A stretch of DNA of 64,000 nt, taken from assembly GCF_021028975.2 (NCBI RefSeq), contig NC_059436.1:25482001-25546000 (forward strand), read 5' to 3'. Of the stretch, positions 25,632 through 41,575 are shown piece by piece (position 1 is the first letter of the stretch; every line of letters starts with the position of its first letter). Under the pieces are notes generated by a model that saw nothing but the letters and a program-made list of their open reading frames with translations, had not been told where the DNA came from and did no database searches. The position numbers and the translations under genes are program-made. The DNA comes from Sphaerodactylus townsendi. Lineage: Eukaryota.

Positions 25632-30157
<4,526 letters not shown>

Positions 30158-30861: not shown

Positions 30862-32159
30862 TGATCAACATCTCGTGTGTGTGTGTGTGTGCTTCTGTTT
30901 CTCTGCACTGACCAGAACCTTTTTCTGGCTCCTGCCTAAGGGTCCATAGTTATGAAATCTGACATTCTCTTTTCCACATCCACCGAATAACTGGGGCAGG
31001 GAGCTAGAAGGGTTGCGTAGATGCTGCAGTTACCTGTAGAAGGTAGACCGCTTCTCCCCGAATTCTTTGTAGTTGTCCATTTTCATTACCCCCAGAGCAG
31101 AGGGCTGATCATCCTTTTGGCCCATGTTCTGAAGAGGAGACACAGCATCCCACCTTGGAAGCCAGCAGACCAAATGGGCTGTGAGTGATCTCAGCCAAAC
31201 CCGATCTCTGAGACTCCTTTGGGGTTGCTGGTGGGTGCAGGCTTGGAAGGCAGTGATGGGCAGAAACTGGGCATGTTTCCTTTGCCTCCTGGCACAGGGC
31301 TGCTGGTGCTGCTCCTATGGCAGTCTGTGGGAGGGGTCCTGTTGAAGGGAGGTGTATCCAGCTTTAACATGGAGGCTGCATCACCCTTCAAAACATGTGC
31401 TGTGTCTGCGAGACAAAGGGGTTGGCTGAGCTGCAGAGCTCCTGCCTCATGAAGCACTGGTCGGGGCTCATGGTGAGTGGACCCATAGAAGGCAGCCCAG
31501 AGTGATTATCTTGTTTCTAACACCCAGAGATAGAAGGACATAAGCAATACCTGTTGTACAGACTGCAGTTTGACGTGACACTTTGTGAAGGAGAAAATCA
31601 CCATCGGCTGGCAGGAGAATGCCTGGGAGATCAGTCTGCATGCAGCTAGAGGTTCTTCGAGTTAGTTTGCATAGAATTTCCCTTAGGATCACGCTGGGGA
31701 TGTTTTCCTGGGTGAACAGCCAGCAAGTGAAATAAGCGACCACCCTGAAGTTCAAATTCAGTCCTAACATGAAAATTCCCAGTGTGGTGTATACTATTAG
31801 GGGGCCGGGCAATTTCAGTAAAAGGATTTCTTCATGGCCACCGGCTGTGTTGACTAAATGGGGCCAGCAGCCACCTGAATCCCAGTGCTGGGAGGTGATG
31901 CCAAGGCAGCTGGCTGGCCCCTTGGGGAAATGAGACGGGGGGGCTACACGGGCCGGATCCAGCAGTCCGCTGTTCCGCTTGTCCAGAGCTGGTGGCTGCC
32001 TGTGGCGTGGGGGTGGGTGCGCAGGTGTTGCCCCGCCCCGCTACCCCAGCTACGTGACGATGGGGGGGAGAGCCCCAAAGCAGGCACCGCCCCCTGGCTG
32101 CGCCCATGCCCTGTCCCCCTCCGGGAAGGGCGGGCGGGGCGTGGGGGCTCCTCTCCGCA

Positions 32160-32329
32160 GACTGGCCGCATTTGAATCGAGCGCGCTGCTGCCCCATTGG
32201 CTCCAGGCGCCGGCCAATGAGCAGCAGCCCCGGGCAGCCGCGTCCAATCGGAGCGCCGAAGGGGCCAGCGATGTAGATACTGCGCGGGGGCTACAAAAGC
32301 GGCGCGGCTCCAGGGCGGAGGGGGCAGGC
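32160..32329 (+). promoter_or_regulatory. H2AX promoter: three CCAAT boxes, CHR-like TTTGAA, degenerate TATA
   Basis: ATTGG at about 32196, CCAAT at about 32214 and 32244, TTTGAA at 32171-32176, TACAAAA at 32292-32298, about 30 nt before the ATG. Confidence 0.7.
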
Positions 32330-32740
32330 ATGTCGGCGCGCGGGAAGAGCAGCGGCGGCGGCGCGCGGGGGAAGTCGCGGTCGTGGCGGGCCGGGCTGCG
32401 GTTCCCGGTGGGGCGCGTGCACCGGCTGCTGCGGCGCGGGCGCTACGCTTCGCGGGTGGGCGCGGGAGCGGCCGTGTACCTGGCGGCGGTGCTGGAGTAC
32501 CTGGCGGCCGAGGTGCTGGAGCTGGCGGGCAACGCGGCGCGCGACCACCGCAAGGTGCGCATCGTGCCCCGCCACGTGCAGCTGGCCGCGCGCCACGACG
32601 CGGAGCTGGGCCTCCTGCTGGGTCGCGTCACCATCGCGCAGGGCGGCGTCCTGCCCCACATCCCCGCCGCCCTCCTGCCGCTCAAGGCCGCCGCCGCCGC
32701 CGCCAAGAAGCTGCCCGACCAGGCCTCGCAGGAGTACTGA
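32330..32740 (+). CDS. H2AX: Histone H2A.X (intronless, 136 aa, unusually divergent)
   Basis: H2A fold ([43 protein letters not shown]) with C-terminal ASQEY*; sits in the syntenic H2AX position between DPAGT1 and HMBS. Confidence 0.93.
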
Positions 32741-32924
32741 CCCGCCCCCCGGGCCGATCCCGACTCTGGTAGGTGACCCTCCGCGCTCCACCGGGGGGTG
32801 TCTTGCCGCAGGCTGTGCGGGCCTCTTCCAGGCAGCTGCCCGTCGAGCGGGGGCGGGGGGGGGGGAGGGGCGACGCCGTCGTGTAGCCAGCTCGTTTTCC
32901 AGTCACCGTTTTAACCACCATCTC

Positions 32925-32930
32925 TTTAAT
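32925..32930 (-). terminator. Putative HMBS polyadenylation signal ATTAAA
   Basis: tttaat on the + strand, about 108 nt past the HMBS stop. Confidence 0.6.
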
Positions 32931-33037
32931 CGCTTCAAGGAGTCCTTTCCCGCCACAGAAACAGCCCCCCCCCCCCCCCCCCCCCCCCCAATAAGGCACC
33001 GAGAGTGATCAGTCCCCACCCCAGCTGGGGCAGACAT

Positions 33038-36000
33038 TCAGGGCTGGTGAGGGCAAGGCGGTGGCGAGGCTGCCCTTCCGTTGCCCCCGCGTGGGAGTCC
33101 GACTGGCTCTCCGGTCTCGTTGAGCTGCCTGGCCACCGCGAGGATCAGCCCGGCTCCTTGGCTGAGCAGCAGCTCTGCCAGATCCACCCCCAGCTTCTCG
33201 GCTGCCTGCTGAGCCCGGCCAGGGACCGTCCTGGCGGTGATGCCCACGTGCTGCGTGTCATCGTTTGGCCCGTCTGTGTCCTGGGGAGAGAGGGGTGGGT
33301 TATAGAGGCCTGCCTGGGGCAACTTCACTTAGTGGCAAGAGCTAACCTGCAGCACTGATGCTCCAACCGTGGCTGCATGCTGCTTCAACACATGCGAGCC
33401 CCTTTGCTGCAGTTCCAGGTGCATTTATGCAAGTCTATGTGCAAGTCTCAGCTTTTCCCCCCACACTCCTCTTTAGCTTGTAAAGTGGGAAAGCACACAC
33501 ACACAGAGGACAATGCAAAAGCAGTAGGTGTTGGTACCTCTAGTGGGAAATCCACAGTGGCTTGCATGGTCTGCTGGAGGCTCTCTGCTCCATCCAGGCT
33601 GTAGACGGCCCCAGTCAAATAAAGCTAGAAGAGGAAGTAGGGATAGCAGCAGGCAGGTGAAAGGTACAGAAAGCAGCCGGCTCATTTTGGTCTCCCCTTT
33701 TCTAGTGCCCCATCTCCACCATTGTTGTTACCTGCAAATCCTTCACCGTGGTGCTCACTGCCACTGGGACGCTGCAGCCGCCCTCCTGGAATTGAAGGAA
33801 CCCCGTGGATTACTGGAGCATCAGCACCTGACCAGTCGCCCCACCCCTGCCGTGGGAGCAGGCTGCTTCATGGCTCGGCATTCGGACCTTGCCCTGCAAG
33901 GCTTACCAAACGCTTCATGAAGGCCCTCTCCGCAATGCAACACAGCACAGTCTCCCGATCATGCAAGACGGACACCAGCTCCAGGATCTCGTGGTCTTTG
34001 GCTCTCACCTCCACTGCCAAGGCACCCTAAAGGGACAAAGCCGGCAGGGCCCCCTCAGCCTCTCCCAAGGAGAACAGGCTCCTCTGCTTAGCACAGTTAG
34101 TAGCAGGTTGGAGGGAGACAGAGTAGTGGCAGCACCGGCCTCCTTAAAGGAAGTGATGTCGATTGATGGGGTATTCATTTCCATCCCCCTTGGCCCAGAA
34201 CAACCAGATCCAAAACAAAAGGAAGCCTGCAAACTCTGGTTGGGGAGGCTCCAGTGGAAGTGGGGTGAGTGGGTTTCCCCAAGCAAATTCACCCCTTCCC
34301 CATAGTTCTGGAAGGCCTTGGAGACACCCCAAGCACGGGGACCCCTGCTTTAATTAGATGTGCTAGCAAGAAGAATGCCAGAGCGACTTCAGGCTTGAGA
34401 AACTCATGCGCCTAGGGCAGGACGTAGAACCCTAACCCTTTGCATACCTGCCCAACAGCATACAAGCAGTCTGCAGGGCTCAAGATCTGAAACAAAGCAA
34501 GACTGGCAGTTAGACCTCACAGACTTCCTTTGGGACCCTGCAGTTGCTTCTAATAAAACTGTTTCCTAACTGCTGCTTTGGGGTCTGTTTTTAATGGCTG
34601 CCTGCAATTCTTTCCTGTTTTGGCAAATTCAGAATGTGGCTATCCTGGAGGGAAATTGTAAAACAGGTCATGAGGAGAGGGCTTTGGCAACTTTCTGAAA
34701 CCTGGCCTGGAAATTTGTCTCCAGCTTTGCGATTGTCCCATGAGGACCACCCTAGCCGCCCTCTGAGCCTTGTACCTGCAGCTCCAGCATGCTCGTAACC
34801 TGGCCTGTGGTGCCGCTCTGTGCTGCCACCTCTGGAATTCCAACATACCCCACAACGCTTTTTGCCCCACAGCACCTACCACACGTTCCTAGTTAACATC
34901 CAGCCAAAAGCATTCAACGCCTCCCGCTCTGAGCTCACCTGGCCCATACGGCTGTCCCAACCCATCCGCTTCAGGCCAGCAGCAGCCAGGATAATGGCAC
35001 TGAAATCTTCCTTCTCATCCAGCTTCTTCAAGCGTGTGTTCAAATTCCCTCTCTGTGGGGTAGCTTAAGGGAAAACAAAACACACCTCCGCAAGGCACAC
35101 TGACAGGTGCTGCTCTCTCTGGCCCCCAGGGCACACTGATCTCTCAAGGACCAAGGGAGACCAGCTCGCTTTGGCTGTCTCTTCATCAGCACACGCTCCT
35201 CAACAGGCTGGCCTAACCCCAACTCCTTTTTACACAACCACAGGCTTCAGCGCAAAGCCATGAGGTCTCTAAGCAGGAACCCCTAACCCCACAGATAGAA
35301 GGACTCTAAATTGGCATGTACCCTCTTGTGGTGTTGGCCCCACTTACATGCAGGGCTGCTTCTCCCTCTGCTCTGCTCATGTCAGGAGGGGCTTCTGCAG
35401 TGCCAGCCTGCCAAGGAGCCACATCCACAAGAGCCTGCCTGTGTTGGGCTTTCTCCTCTTGTGCAGCAGCCTGCCTGGAGGTAAGGAATGTTCCCACTCT
35501 TGGCTTTCCACAAACTTTGCAAAGCTGAACGTGGGGGCTTTTCTGCATAGATAATAAGGCTGCTCAGAGCAAAATGAGCTTGGATAAATGACTGGGACTT
35601 GTGGTCTTTGCTTGCTGTATACAGCATATTACAAGTACGATTCTACTGTGTAAATTTCTGTCCCGCTTAATATGCCACTGTTATTATTTATGTTGTGTTT
35701 GGTTGTTTCTTTCTGGTAATTCCTGGCTTCCAGTACCCTAATGCACTGGTTATTGAGTCTCCTTTGTTAGTGCTGAGTCACTAATTCACTTTGAGTCCCT
35801 GTGTGAAAGGTAGACTGTAAGTAACGTAAATAAGTAAAATGCCTCTGATTCAAAAGAGGCCCAGCGGTCTAATGCAGAACCACGAAAGGATACAATATCC
35901 CTGAACTCCAGTTGAGGAAACTTCCTCTTCAGCTGAGCTGCTCGACGGAGGGAGCTGGTGCCAACCACACTGCCGAGGGACAATTGGAAGCACACATCAG

Positions 36001-39000
36001 AACAAAGCCACGGCCGGGGACGTCCTTCCGCCATGACCGGCTGGTTAAGGGGCGGCAACTTCAGTCCAGAAAATAGGTGGCTCAGGGGAAACATGGGATT
36101 GTGCTTGGGGTGGAGAAAGCGGGCAGAGGGCGCTTTTCCGCCTCCCACAATATCAGGACTGGGGGACACGCAGTGAGGTTGCTGGGAAATAGGGAAATCC
36201 ACTGCCAGTGGGAGGTAGTGGTGGCAACCGGCAGAAAGCTGAACAAGGAGAGGTCCATTGACAGCTACCATCACCATGGTGCCTTAAGGGCAGCCTCCAT
36301 GTTCAGAGGCAGCAAACCTCTCAATCCCCTGGGCTTGGGTGGTGTCAGCAGGAGGTCTTGGCCTCCACGCCCTGTGTGTTGGGACCTGCAAGGCAACCGG
36401 TGGGCCACTGTCCTGATCAAGCAGGTTCTTGCAAAGGTTTGGGGTGGCAAAACAATGGATCTAACTGCAGCCAAGGGGAGAATATGCAAAAGACAGCGAG
36501 CTTCATGGTGGGGAGTGGGACAGAACTCAGCCCACTCGACCTGGCAGGAAGGCTGGCTGGGAGGGGGCAGCTGAGGGGCTGAGCATGACGAGCAGAGCAC
36601 AGCACACTCACCTCTTGCCAGGGAGGCTGCTGAGAGTTTCCCCACAGTGCTTAGGGTGGAAGACGACGGCATCGTGAGGGTTCTCTCTCCTGCATGGAGC
36701 CATGGGGGGGGGGGGAGGTGTCAGCTGAGCGTTAGCAGGATTCCCATGCCCCCCCACCCCGCACAACTGAGAGCTCCAGCTCCAGCATGCGCCTGAGGCT
36801 CCAGCCGGAGGTGCCCTGCCCCACAGCAACAGGGGCCCCAATCTAGCCCCAGGGGGAGGAGAGGAGGCTAGTTGGCCCAGGCCCACGCTGCCCCACACCC
36901 ATCAAGGTGGGCCTCGCAAAAGCGCTCCAACTCACTTGCAGACGGCACCAATAGTGAAGCCCAGGGGCAGGGATGTGGGCAGGTCCTTCAGCGAGTGGAC
37001 CACCAAGTCCACCCTGAAAACAGAGCAGAACAGAGAGGGGACTGGAGGGGACAGCAAACACCCAATGGGTGAGTCCAAGGCGGGCGGCGGCAGGATTGGT
37101 ACAAGAGCCAGGCAGCCTTGAGCAAGCACCATTCAGCATGGCCCACTTTTCAGGATTGTTGCAATAAGAATTTAACAAACATTACATAATATACTGGGGC
37201 ACAATGTCACAGGTGAGAACGCAAACACCCTGGCTAAAAGGGCAAGGAAACACTGAACGCTGGGCTCCTCTCCTGGGGGGTTTGTTTGGGGCAGCAGCTC
37301 TGCAGGAACCCAACATCAAAGAGCCCTTCCCCCACACCACATGCCAGGCCCCCCAGCCCTTCCAGTGAGGCCTGAAGGGCAAAATTCAGGCCAGCTCCAA
37401 AAGGACACTTACTCATTTCTCTCTAGTGCATTTTCCAGCTCCTTGGTGAAGAGGCTTTTCTCTCCAATCTAAGTGGGGGAAGAGGCCGCCTGTCAGTAGC
37501 AAAGAAGACCCTCCCACTAAGCCAGCCTCAGCCAAGGGAGACGGAGGGGACAAGACTCACCTTGGAGAGAGCCGTATCCAGGATCTTGTCTCCAGTGGTT
37601 GACATGGCAACTGTTGAAACACATACAGAAGGGGGGGTCACTCCAGCACCAGCGGGATGGATGCAGGAGACTGTGGTGGGGAGGGCTTGAGGCCCTGGGG
37701 GAGAGAGGGGTGTCCTGTCCTGCCAGGGCAGCAAACAGCCATGCATGGAGAAGGGTTGCTCTCTGCCCCCAGCCCTCCTTCCGTCTGCCTCTCCCACCCA
37801 GGGCCTTCTGTCCCCAGGCACTCACCAATCTCAAAGCAGAGGTGGGGGTGGTGGTCCTGGAGCATCTGCACCACGCTGTCCGTCTGGATCCGAGCCAGCT
37901 GTAACCCCAAGCGAAGACAGGTGAAGCCTTGGAGAGCATGCAGAGGGAGTGACCTGCGGCTGGGGTGAGCCCCTCAGGGGGAGCAGCCGTGGCCACGCCA
38001 GCCCAGCCGACACTCAGGGGGACAACAGGGGGGCTGGGCTGCTCCTGCCACAGCTGGGGGTCAGGCAGACTGGGTGCGCCCCTGCAGAAAGCCAGGGAAG
38101 CAGAGCTGGGGGGCACATGCACAGCCCCCTCCTGCCCATTTCCCTCTCATTCATGGTTAATGCCCCCAGGGAGGCCCCTGCAAGGGACTGCTGCACCAGG
38201 AGCCAGCAAAGGCAGATTAGCTGCTCTCCACCGCAAGGGTGGGGGCATTATCTTCCTTCACAAGCTTCCCCGCCCCGCCCCACCCCACCCTCCACCTTCC
38301 TTTCTGGGATTCTGCAGGGGAGACTTGAGGAGGAAACTTCCTTTGGCCAAGCAAGGGGAGGAGGGGGGGCTTCACCTGGCTCTTCCTGGTTCCGACACGG
38401 ATCGTGTGGTTTTTCGTGCCATTTTCTTCCTGCAAAGGTTTGTCTCCATTTATTCCAAGAAATTTGATTGTGAGTTCCTGCGTGGCAGGCGGTTGGACTT
38501 GCTGGCCCTTGGGGTCTCTTCCAGCTCTTATGAGTCTATAAGTGAAACTTCTCCACCAAATGCAAAGCTGGCCAGAGCCAGCATTAATCTCCTCGCGCTG
38601 GGCATCAGGCTGGCTGTGTGACCACAGACACGAAGAGGGACCCACCAGCGACCCACACTCGGCAGCCTTGCTCCATTCCGAGGGTCACCCCATCCCCAAG
38701 ACACCAACCATTCCTTAGGCGCTAGATGGGCAACCAAACGGAACAGTCTCCACTTGCTGAAATCCAGACCCCAAGCAGCTGGCAGGAGAGCCCTTCCTGT
38801 GGGCCCTCAACTCTACTCTCCACCTCACCCTGCCCTTCCTGCAGGCTGCTCCGGTGGCAGACGTGGCTCTCCCTGCACTCCAGGACCCGGCCACACCTGC
38901 TCCACAGCCTCCCAGTGCACTCAGCAGGCAGAGTAGAGACCTGGAGCCAAGCCTTCCTGCCCCCTTCCAGGCAGATGCCCAGCATGCTGCCCTTTCCTCC

Positions 39001-40215
39001 AGCACAGAAGCAAAGACATGAGAGGAGCCGAGAGAATCCACACCCACCCCTCTGCCCTACAGTCACCAAGTCCAGCCATGGAGACCATACGCAGATGGCC
39101 GGAAGGCGGGGCCAGCAAGCCACTCTTGCAGAGGACTAGGGACTAGCGTCAGAAGGTAGTCCGGCCTCTTGCTGGAAGGCCAGGGTGTGTGGGCGAGGGT
39201 GGGTGGGTGGGTGGGGGAAATGCAAGGCCTCAGTGACTGCTCCACCCAGTAATAAGGAGAGCAACCATCATGTGATGCCAGCAGCAGGAACCCAAAGCAG
39301 CATTCCAGGCTCTCCCCTCCCCCAGTACCTGACTAGGCCTAGACCCCTGAAGACTCCCCCAGTACCTGACTAGGCCCCAGCAGCACGTCCGCCATCTCCA
39401 GCACCCACGAGGTCTCTGCCAGCCACTGTGCGGGTGTGGGATCAAGGGAGCTTCTCTTCACAAAACGAGCCCCAATGTGGGGCCAGAGATAAGGAGAAGG
39501 AGGGGGCTGGATGGGCGGAGGCCTGGAAGGAGGACAGCTGTGGACGCTGCCAGCAAGGAGGCTGCCCAGGTCCCACCCACACAGAAAGGACTGTTCTGGT
39601 GAGCCAGCGGCAGGAGCAGGCATCCTTCTGACCCAAGCAGCAAACAATGGGGCCATTTTTGCAAATGAACAACGGTCATTTCACCCACGATTTTGCAGGA
39701 GCAGGGGGAGAATGGGTCCAACCCCCCAACCCCCTTCCTAATGCCAGGATCGTCTACTTCATGCTGTGCTTCAGTTTGCCAGGCAGGGGCTGCACCTCCA
39801 AAAGGATCCCACGTCACAGTCCCTTGAAGCAACTGATGGGGCATCCAAGAGTCAGGGGGCCTCGACAGAGTGCCAACCATCTGGGGAAGGAGACCGAGAG
39901 AGCCAAGAAGGCCCCGGGAGCAAAATGCACAGCAGGAGAAAGTCTGGGGGGTTTCTGCATTTCGGGAGCACTGGGGATAAAATCTGAACGTAAGAACTTT
40001 AGTGCTGTGTTGCATTTAATGTTGTTATAGAATTCACTATTGTGGCAGAGAAGACACAGTTTCAACCTAGGATCTGGAAGACCCACGTTCAAATTCCCAC
40101 TCTGCCACAGAAGCCTGCTGGGTGACCTTGGTTGGGGCAGTCCCACACAGAGCCTGACCTACCTTACAGGGTTGTTATGAGGATAAGGGGGAGGGCAGTC
40201 TACAAACCGAATATA

Positions 40216-40286
<71 letters not shown>

Positions 40287-41575
40287 AATAAGGACAGGAA
40301 AATGAGATCAACCACTTTAGGTCCCCCCAATAGAAAGAAAAATACTCTAAATACATTTCAGTACTTGACTTAATATCAAACCCATCCTGGAAGCTTCACT
40401 TAAGGCAATCCTAAGAAACACTTTCTTCTGTTTAACGCAGGTTGCAGTGCAGCTGGTGCCTAGGTTTTAATTTTGCATGGTGGCCTACGTAAGTCAATCA
40501 GGCAACAAGAATACGGCCATGGGCACCTCCATGTCAAGGGTGGGGGATGCTGGCAGTTTTTCTTATAGAAAACAGAAACCATCCAGGTGGGGGCCGTGGC
40601 TCAGAGGCAGAGCCTCCGCCTGGCATACAGAAGGCCCTGGGTTCAATCTCCTCTGCTGTGGACCCTGGAGAGCGGCTGCCAGGTGCAACTGACAATGCGC
40701 TCCTCCTTCACAGGTGCCACAAGACAGTTCACGGGTGCGTGTGTTTTTTTTTGGGGGGGGGGGAGGTCTCGGGTTCAATCCCAGGTGCCTCCACTCGAAC
40801 GCAGCAGAGAGCAGGTGGTGGGAGGTCAGCCCCAGATCCCGGGGAACCACGGCCAGTTCCAGGTCCCGTACGGACGGGGGGGGGGGGGGGCGCTGATCGG
40901 GGAACGGGCGGCTTCGGGTGGGCCTGGAGGCATATTCTCCCGTGCCCGTGGGGCTCACTCCCGCAACAACCAGGGTCAGCACCCGAGGACCCTTTCCGCG
41001 CAGTGAGACGCCGGAGGGTCGGCGGGGCCCTGCGCAAGCTCTGCAGTTGCCGGGCTCGTTCTGGGGGGAGCGGAGCAGAGCGCCACCCCCACCCCCCGCG
41101 GATGCCAGGCACAGGGAGGCCCCGCGTGGCTACGGCCGCCGCCGCCGCCCTCCCGGGCAGCAGACAGCAGGAAGCGGGGTCGCCTCTGCCTGCCGCCACC
41201 AGCCGGAGCACAGGCGCGGGCCCCGAACGACCGGGCCTCCCGTCTCCCCCCCGCCCCCCCCCCCCGAAAGCCAGCCGCCGCCTCCGCGCATTGGGCAAGC
41301 GCCGCACTCGGCTCCCGCGGGGATTTCGCAAGGCGGAGCGGGCGCCGCTTGGGGGCCGTAGCCAGGAAGGACCTCCTCCGGGACCCCTCCCCCGCAGGGG
41401 TCAACCAACCTGGCCTACCTCACAGGGGCCGCCTTTGCGTGCGGCTCATCAATCTCAAGTGCGCCGGGGGGGGGTAATTAGCTTGCAGCCCCCCCCCCGG
41501 GGCCAGGCCAGTTTTGCAGCCGCGCCCGAGGGGGCAAGGCGCCGGGAGACTCACCGCGGCCGGAGGGGCGCTCAT
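33038..41575 (-). CDS. HMBS: Hydroxymethylbilane synthase (porphobilinogen deaminase); 14 coding exons, 380 aa
   Basis: Exons 41555-41575 (MSAPPAA|gtgagt, least certain), 38376-38429, 37826-37898, 37561-37610, 37413-37468, 36936-37013, 36612-36689, 35894-35969, 34939-35052, 34448-34486, 33907-34026, 33732-33785, 33538-33624, 33038-33280 (1143 nt). Motifs [58 protein letters not shown] (cofactor Cys). Confidence 0.96.
35053..35893 (-). other. HMBS: U12-type GT-AG intron in HMBS
   Basis: Donor GTATCCTTT; branch-like TCCCTTAAG about 10 nt before the acceptor cacAG, with no long pyrimidine tract between them. Confidence 0.85.
39317..39376. repeat. 23-nt direct repeat x2 in HMBS intron 1
   Basis: ctcccccagtacctgactaggcc at 39317-39339 and 39354-39376. 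Confidence 0.9.
40040..40290 (+). mobile_element. SINE with (TAAA)n tail
   Basis: B box gttcaaattccc, CORE cctaccttacagggttgtt, then about 18 TAAA units at 40216-40288. Confidence 0.7.
40588..40700 (+). mobile_element. tRNA-derived SINE head
   Basis: ggggccgtggctcagaggcagagc...gggttcaatctcc. Confidence 0.55.

Follow-up and report, generated by a model that had tools for sequence, protein, structure and literature searches.

The H2AX gene of the gecko Sphaerodactylus townsendi lies at its syntenic position and encodes a protein that still ends in SQEY, but its histone core differs from that of human H2AX at 23 sites, 12 of which are changed in the Sphaerodactylus lineage only. The reading we favour, with a probability of about 0.58, is that this is the single syntenic H2AX of the species, that the recent replacements accumulated mainly under gene-specific relaxed, still partial, purifying selection with function retained, and that the older replacements were fixed with a GC bias.

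Few proteins evolve as slowly as the cores of H2A-type histones, and H2AX serves as a universal marker of DNA breaks. Literature searches returned no paper on the evolution of squamate or gecko H2AX, on the AT->GC layer of replacements described below, or on the absence of the histone stem-loop in squamates. The S. townsendi genome paper documents resequencing and RNA-seq data. All coordinates given here refer to the window, the whole stretch of 64,000 nucleotides of S. townsendi contig NC_059436.1 that was analysed.

Results

The H2AX gene and its neighbourhood

The initial annotation had placed an intact ORF at the syntenic H2AX position, and this was confirmed. The ORF begins with the ATG at 32330 and ends with a TGA at 32740, has 136 codons with no internal stop, and is flanked by DPAGT1 and HMBS in the order C2CD2L-DPAGT1-H2AX-HMBS-VPS11, according to gene calls with their Pfam families. 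The gene and the neighbours used in the analysis are:

25632..30157, + strand: DPAGT1, upstream neighbour and synteny anchor (gene call)
32330..32740, + strand: H2AX coding sequence, intronless, 136 aa plus stop, C-terminal SQEY, GC 77.6%, GC3 97%
33038..41575, - strand: HMBS (porphobilinogen deaminase), convergent neighbour and rate control (gene call)

Both the H2A fold and the docking domain are present (Pfam Histone PF00125, E 9e-13; Histone_H2A_C PF16211, E 3e-13), the best PDB matches of the ORF protein are H2A/H2AX chains (E 1e-52), and the C-terminus reads QASQEY followed by the stop, with the SQEY motif kept in all squamate orthologues of the alignment. HMBS adjoins H2AX in seven other sauropsids (Heteronotia, Gekko kuhli, Eublepharis, Crotalus, Pogona, Tiliqua and a bird), and in Podarcis DPAGT1 lies upstream of H2AX. 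Since the gene occupies the DPAGT1-HMBS position in other sauropsids too, the ORF is the true syntenic H2AX orthologue rather than a stray copy. An identical protein is recorded in assembly GCA_021028975.2. Among the best 120 hits the nearest proteins are gecko H2AX (Euleptes with 86%, then Heteronotia, Gekko and Eublepharis), followed by those of snakes and lizards. These 120 hits contained no other SQEY-type H2A of S. townsendi, and neither did the 90% clusters around the query and around Euleptes H2AX; the 64-kb window has a single H2A gene.

The UniProt model of the protein (P0121, 'Histone H2AX', 185 aa) adds an upstream exon at about 32183-32329, running through the CCAAT/TATA region. 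This exon is probably a mis-annotation, because the methionine of MSxRGK starts all orthologues.

Comparison with human H2AX

Human H2AX was represented, at the protein level only, by the PDB chains 9q80_C and 6k1i_C in an HMMER alignment. Over core residues 16-119 the two proteins are identical at 81 of 104 positions, and the alignment reproduced every one of the 23 core differences that had been listed from the letters of the sequence:

S19W, Q24R, K36R, H38R, E41S, P48A, T59A, I62V, N73H, K74R, T76V, I79V, L83V, I87A, N89H, E91A, N94G, K95L, G99R, N110H, Q112P, V114A, K118L

The other residues named in the initial annotation also behaved as described: K9, K13 and T120 are lost (to G, R and A, respectively), the C-tail is 6 aa shorter than in human and contains an Ala run, and K5, K15, K119 and the terminal SQEY are retained. 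At position 120, which in H2A is the BUB1 site, almost every squamate H2AX has Ala instead of Thr. The acidic patch needs a correction. Its residues E56, E61, E64, D90 and E92 are indeed kept, but the patch is not wholly kept, since E91, one of the six H2A acidic-patch residues (PMC10606924), is replaced by Ala.

Compared with vertebrate H2AX more widely (human 9q80/6k1i and bird P0061), the S. townsendi gene has in common the H2A fold with its C-terminal domain, the terminal SQEY, an intronless gene between DPAGT1 and HMBS, a CCAAT-rich promoter, the ubiquitylation sites K15 and K119, and most of the acidic patch. It differs in the L1 loop (RYAS here, HYAE there), in the shorter, Ala-rich C-tail, in a degenerate TATA box, and in lacking the 3' stem-loop that the bird gene carries at +36. 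With respect to the human protein, the 23/104 changed core sites, 12 of them lineage-specific, include P48A as well as E91A and N89H, which alter the acidic patch, and T120 and K13 are lost in addition. As regards the RNF168-site lysines, residue 15 is Q in Euleptes, Gekko and Heteronotia, where K13 is kept, and Sphaerodactylus has R13 together with K15.

Layers of divergence

The core differences were sorted into layers using a 29-sequence protein alignment and a codon-by-codon table, Euleptes being included at the protein level only and the mammal-like protein P0046 as a protein row only. The squamate orthologues compared were those of Euleptes (P0013), Heteronotia (P0020), Gekko (P0016/P0122), Eublepharis (P0021), snakes, lacertids and agamids. 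Four layers were distinguished:

Shared with birds (1 site): K36R
Squamate-wide (7 sites): K74R, I79V, L83V, N94S/G, G99R, Q112P, V114A
Most or all geckos (3 sites): H38R, N73H, N110H
Sphaerodactylus only (12 sites): S19W, H24R, E41S, P48A, T59A, I62V, A76V, V87A, N89H, E91A, R95L, R118L

Some positions changed more than once: K95R and K118R are squamate-wide, and Q24H and T76A are gecko-level changes, and each was altered again in Sphaerodactylus and is counted in the lineage-only layer. The gene consequently shares K36R, K74R, I79V, L83V, N94S/G, K95R, G99R, Q112P, V114A, K118R and T120A with other squamate H2AX, along with extreme GC3 and the lack of a stem-loop, and it shares Q24H, N73H, T76A (also H38R and N110H) and the short Ala-rich tail with gecko H2AX. 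What sets it apart is the last layer: other squamate H2AX proteins have 0-3 lineage-specific core replacements against 12 here, and most of their genes keep TATAAA and the proximal CCAAT.

About half of the apparent rapid change is old and shared with other squamates. The claim of rapid evolution made in the initial annotation holds for 12/23 sites, which are confined to the Sphaerodactylus lineage and accompanied by a raised omega, and fails for the 11/23 old shared sites; in the same proportions, the alternative that the residues are an old divergence shared across sauropsids is right for the 11 sites found in birds, squamates or geckos and wrong for the other 12. Judging from the alignment, the 12-site layer arose after the split between Sphaerodactylus and Euleptes.

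Rate of the recent burst

Polarity was taken from three-taxon comparisons, and rates from codon branch likelihoods marginalising over ancestors. Over the 104 core codons we counted 15 nonsynonymous and 4 synonymous changes unique to the query, compared with 0 and 4 unique to Heteronotia (p=6e-5); Gekko, in the same three-taxon comparison, has 3 and 6. At the protein level, 10-12 residues are unique to the query and 0 to Euleptes, its closest sampled relative (p=0.0005-0.002). With the GY94-F3x4 model the query branch has an omega of 0.24 against a background of 0.034 (LRT p=2e-4), and omega=1 is rejected (p=0.013); with MG94 the values are 0.37 and 0.049 (p=1.5e-4), and the test against omega=1 falls short of significance (p=0.08). 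The increase in omega on the query branch is thus about 8-10 fold, and branch dN/dS is elevated under both models (0.24-0.37 vs 0.03-0.05, p~2e-4).

The absolute value of omega depends on the model, crude counts giving about 1 and codon models 0.24-0.37, because dS is compressed by GC3 saturation. With GC3 near 1 this compression inflates naive omega everywhere, and pairwise NG86 dN/dS, for which bird vs squamate dS is only about 0.3, was not used as evidence. Since all 12 replacements are younger than the Euleptes split, the true omega of the terminal branch may be higher.

HMBS served as the control. Over about 200 codons of this gene the query has fewer unique nonsynonymous changes than either gecko (14 vs 28 for Heteronotia and 13 vs 31 for Gekko). 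A lineage-wide cause such as small population size, or a regional one, was rejected since HMBS next door is not accelerated, and a raised mutation rate was rejected since synonymous changes are equal in the query and its sister geckos. The acceleration of H2AX is real, gene-specific and lineage-specific.

The 12 sites favour columns that are less conserved among 97 non-squamate H2As (mean conservation 0.84 vs 0.96, p=0.001), with 2/12 lying within the 54 columns that are >=98% conserved, and positions 41, 59, 62 and 118 change in other squamate H2AX proteins too. The burst nevertheless replaced Q24, P48, N89 and E91, which are near-invariant in the 97 diverse H2As, and the replacements are non-conservative (BLOSUM62 -0.42, against -0.65 expected from random single-nucleotide changes). 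Replacements no milder than random ones, at sites that nevertheless spare most of the best-conserved columns, point to a constraint that is strongly relaxed and not absent.

Base composition

The coding sequence has a GC content of 0.776 and a GC3 of 0.97, with flanks at 0.54-0.56. The slow-evolving Heteronotia gene has a coding GC of 0.779 and a GC3 slightly above that of the query, and GC3 ranges from 0.88 to 0.99 across all sauropsids sampled. At the replacement positions of the older layers we found 15 W>S, 3 S>S and 0 S>W changes. The roughly 15 replacement changes of the query layer comprise 6-7 W>S, 4 S>W and 4-5 S>S, and 3/4 of its synonymous changes are S>W. The initial annotation had offered GC-biased gene conversion (gBGC) as a cause of the divergence. 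The AT->GC bias is strong in the older layers, as would be expected if fixation had long been GC-biased in this intronless and very GC-rich gene; the recent layer shows no GC gain, and gBGC alone does not explain the Sphaerodactylus burst.

Variation in other individuals

Two samples of the same organism (X1 and X2) yielded independent DNA contigs that span 31300 to about 32953 without a break. Within the coding sequence they differ from the query by a synonymous G>A at 32728 and by an in-frame GCG insertion after 32351. The former (X1, X4) sits in the Ser codon of SQEY, and the latter (X2) falls in the Gly/Ser-rich N-tail. Sample X4, which carries a second organism label, has two differences in the coding sequence, both synonymous, so that no nonsynonymous variant was seen in the coding sequence of the resequenced individuals X1, X2 and X4. 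All indels in the H2AX tail are in frame, including the segregating one. The possibility of an assembly error, raised in the initial annotation, is contradicted by this agreement.

In a more distant congener (X7, organism C), 32352-32863 is covered (512 nt) with <=14 mismatches. Since 19 core nucleotides separate the query from the other geckos, we infer that the congener shares at least part of the burst.

Promoter and 3' region

The promoter and the spacer downstream of the gene contain the following features:

32171..32186, + strand: E2F-like promoter element TTTGAATCGAGCGCGC, identified by resemblance, conserved in geckos and Crotalus and slightly altered in Tiliqua
32196..32248, + strand: three CCAAT-type boxes (ATTGG 32196-32200, CCAAT 32214-32218, CCAAT 32244-32248), from the promoter alignment
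32264..32273, + strand: proximal CCAAT position, mutated here to CCAGCGATG, from the alignment and a spacing table
32292..32297, + strand: TATA-like box TACAAA, from the promoter alignment
32741..33037, + strand: convergent spacer/3'UTR region from the H2AX stop to the HMBS stop, about 298 bp, without stem-loop and without AATAAA/ATTAAA

The query promoter retains the E2F-like TTTGAATCGnGCGCGC box and the three CCAAT boxes. The proximal CCAAT, located some 24 nt 5' of the TATA box in five other species, is mutated, and contigs X1/X2 show 0 differences over 32264..32273. The TATA box reads TATAAA in six slower-evolving species (Heteronotia, Gekko, Eublepharis, Crotalus, Podarcis and the bird), and among the species compared TACAAA is otherwise present only in the fast-evolving Tiliqua (L008, about 2964-2969). 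A weakened core promoter may be linked to the relaxed constraint on H2AX, a connection drawn from two lineages, Sphaerodactylus and Tiliqua.

Mammalian H2A.X typically, though not as a strictly defining feature, has dual mRNA 3' ends, formed by a stem-loop and a downstream poly(A) site. A search for the histone stem-loop (RF00032) gave no Rfam hit in the window either at gathering or at E<=10. Since Rfam at gathering missed the obvious stem-loop of the bird, the stem-loop was judged by a consensus scan with shuffles over the 1500 nt after each stop (32741-34240 in the window, and loci L002-L009). No stem-loop was found in 8/8 squamate H2AX loci, where the best matches have 8-10/24 mismatches (9/24 in the query), which is chance level; the bird locus has one with 1/24 mismatches, 36 nt after the stop (L009:3465-3488). 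AATAAA/ATTAAA occurs at +92 to +228 in five squamate H2AX loci, and in the S. townsendi spacer the only poly(A)-like motif is an AATAAG at 32990-32995. This pattern suggests that H2AX went over to polyadenylated mRNA only throughout the squamates, at the same time as the protein changes common to them all, and with it a changed coupling of H2AX supply to S phase.

A G-run at about 32849-32870 and a 25-nt C-run at 32965-32989, about 100 nt apart, could pair with each other, and short-read contigs break there. Hits to miRNA families on both strands of 32848-32990 were rejected as artefacts of this pair.

Discussion

The history that we propose would begin in the squamate stem and continue in geckos, with AT->GC replacements fixed by GC bias. 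After the split from Euleptes, 12 further core replacements would then have accumulated in Sphaerodactylus, mainly through relaxed purifying selection, possibly tied to a promoter weakened by the change of TATAAA to TACAAA and the loss of the proximal CCAAT. The affected parts of the nucleosome would be the L1 loop (R38, S41), the L2 loop (H73, R74, V76), the acidic patch (H89, A91) and the docking/C-terminal region (G94, L95, P112, A114, L118). The features that break signalling requires are kept: the histone fold, the DNA-contacting arginines, K15, K119, 5/6 acidic-patch residues and SQEY. Since these are retained, S. townsendi H2AX most likely still functions as a gamma-H2AX platform, its SQ serine being phosphorylated and the resulting pSQEY-COOH read by BRCT proteins.

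The comparison of relaxation with adaptation is based on a single sequence for each lineage and on very few polymorphisms, and some observations count against relaxation: the MG94 omega is not significantly <1 (p=0.08), and Q24, P48, N89 and E91 were hit although near-invariant. Positive selection would also yield hits at near-invariant residues and replacements of random-level radicality. It could have changed the nucleosome surface of H2AX (E91A/N89H, L1, L2, docking) and thereby its stability or partners, which would agree with a burst made of replacements only (15 vs 0, with synonymous changes equal) that spared HMBS, with the functional standing of the four named residues, with non-conservative replacements that include an Ala at position 91, typical of the short H2A.B variants (PMC10606924), and with present polymorphisms that are synonymous or in frame, a hint that constraint is back. 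However, branch omega is <1 in both codon models (0.24, 0.37), the sites are scattered along the fold without clustering and prefer variable columns, as under relaxation, and the variation of positions 41, 59, 62 and 118 in other squamates suggests low constraint there, so that we regard adaptive remodelling as rather unlikely. A fuller version, in which H2AX was adaptively re-engineered in Sphaerodactylus after loss of the replication-dependent stem-loop had left squamates with a purely polyadenylated variant, with an acidic patch weakened as in H2A.B by E91A/N89H and with a changed L1 loop and docking domain, is unlikely; if true, gamma-H2AX nucleosomes would be less stable or would bind different acidic-patch readers. 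That gBGC also caused the lineage-specific replacements, through fixation of mildly deleterious AT->GC alleles, we consider quite unlikely. It would suit the GC3 of 0.97, the spike of coding GC (0.78) within flanks of 0.54-0.56, the 15 W>S vs 0 S>W of the older layers, the 15/19 W>S of the Tiliqua acceleration and a rate of W>S per AT site about 3-4 times that of S>W per GC site in the query layer. Yet W>S accounts for no more than 6-7 of the roughly 15 replacement changes, the 4 S>W are opposed by gBGC and the 4-5 S>S ignored by it, coding GC is no higher than in Heteronotia with 3/4 synonymous changes S>W, sister geckos of equal or higher GC3 have 0-3 replacements, and HMBS is not accelerated.

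A decaying, unexpressed or functionless gene whose ORF is open by chance is very unlikely. The crude branch dN/dS near 1 (15:4), the MG94 test of omega=1 (p=0.08), the degraded core promoter and the lack of a poly(A) signal or stem-loop near the stop would point that way, but the ORF is intact at its syntenic position, SQEY, K15, K119 and all DNA-binding arginines are kept, tail indels are in frame, the most conserved columns are avoided (p=0.001), omega=1 is rejected under GY94 (p=0.013), conservation extends to the E2F-like box and three CCAAT boxes, and in the related organism C the region is present, with <=14 mismatches over 512 nt. The initial annotation had also suggested a neofunctionalised extra copy accompanied by a conventional H2AX elsewhere. 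This idea found no support, as the gene holds the ancestral DPAGT1-HMBS position and no other H2AX-like S. townsendi protein occurs among the best 120 hits, in the 90% clusters or in the window, and it is highly improbable. The locus is GC-rich and flanked by homopolymers, which would favour a base-calling or assembly error, but contigs from two samples across 31300-32953, whose coding sequence differs by a single synonymous SNP and a 3-nt insertion that keeps the frame, and X4 with its two synonymous differences, reduce this explanation to a negligible chance.

The H2AX of Tiliqua scincoides (P0053, L008:3001-3384) is an independent case of acceleration, with 17-19 unique nonsynonymous changes vs 1-4 in Podarcis and an omega of 0.11-0.17. 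It resembles the gecko gene in the parallel replacements T59A and I62V, in changes at positions 41 and 118 and in TACAAA, and it differs in that 15/19 changes are AT->GC and coding GC reaches 0.805, so that gBGC fits Tiliqua better than Sphaerodactylus. The short H2A variants of mammals (H2A.B and relatives) likewise evolve fast, and Ala91 is typical of H2A.B (PMC10606924). The short H2As, however, have lost several acidic-patch residues, the docking domain and the C-tail, and are without SQEY. An assignment of the S. townsendi protein to the short variants (H2A.B/L/P/Q) was rejected, as its docking domain is of full length, 5/6 acidic residues are kept and SQEY is present.

If relaxation with retained function is the correct reading, H2AX can lose about nine-tenths of its constraint and still keep the SQEY tail. 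The single syntenic H2AX of one vertebrate lineage has taken 12 core replacements, one in the acidic patch, and that of its sister lineage none, which provides natural variants with which to ask what parts of its core H2AX needs. The same divergence calls for caution in antibody- or homology-based work on H2AX in squamates, and the clade-wide AT->GC layer would be a clean example of GC-biased fixation rewriting a histone.

Two minor points concern the genomic setting. The published sex-determining regions of S. townsendi are on LG3 and LG1. Heteronotia binoei has a tRNA gene some 1.9 kb upstream of its H2AX (L002:1069-1140, - strand; Rfam tRNA, 51 bits).
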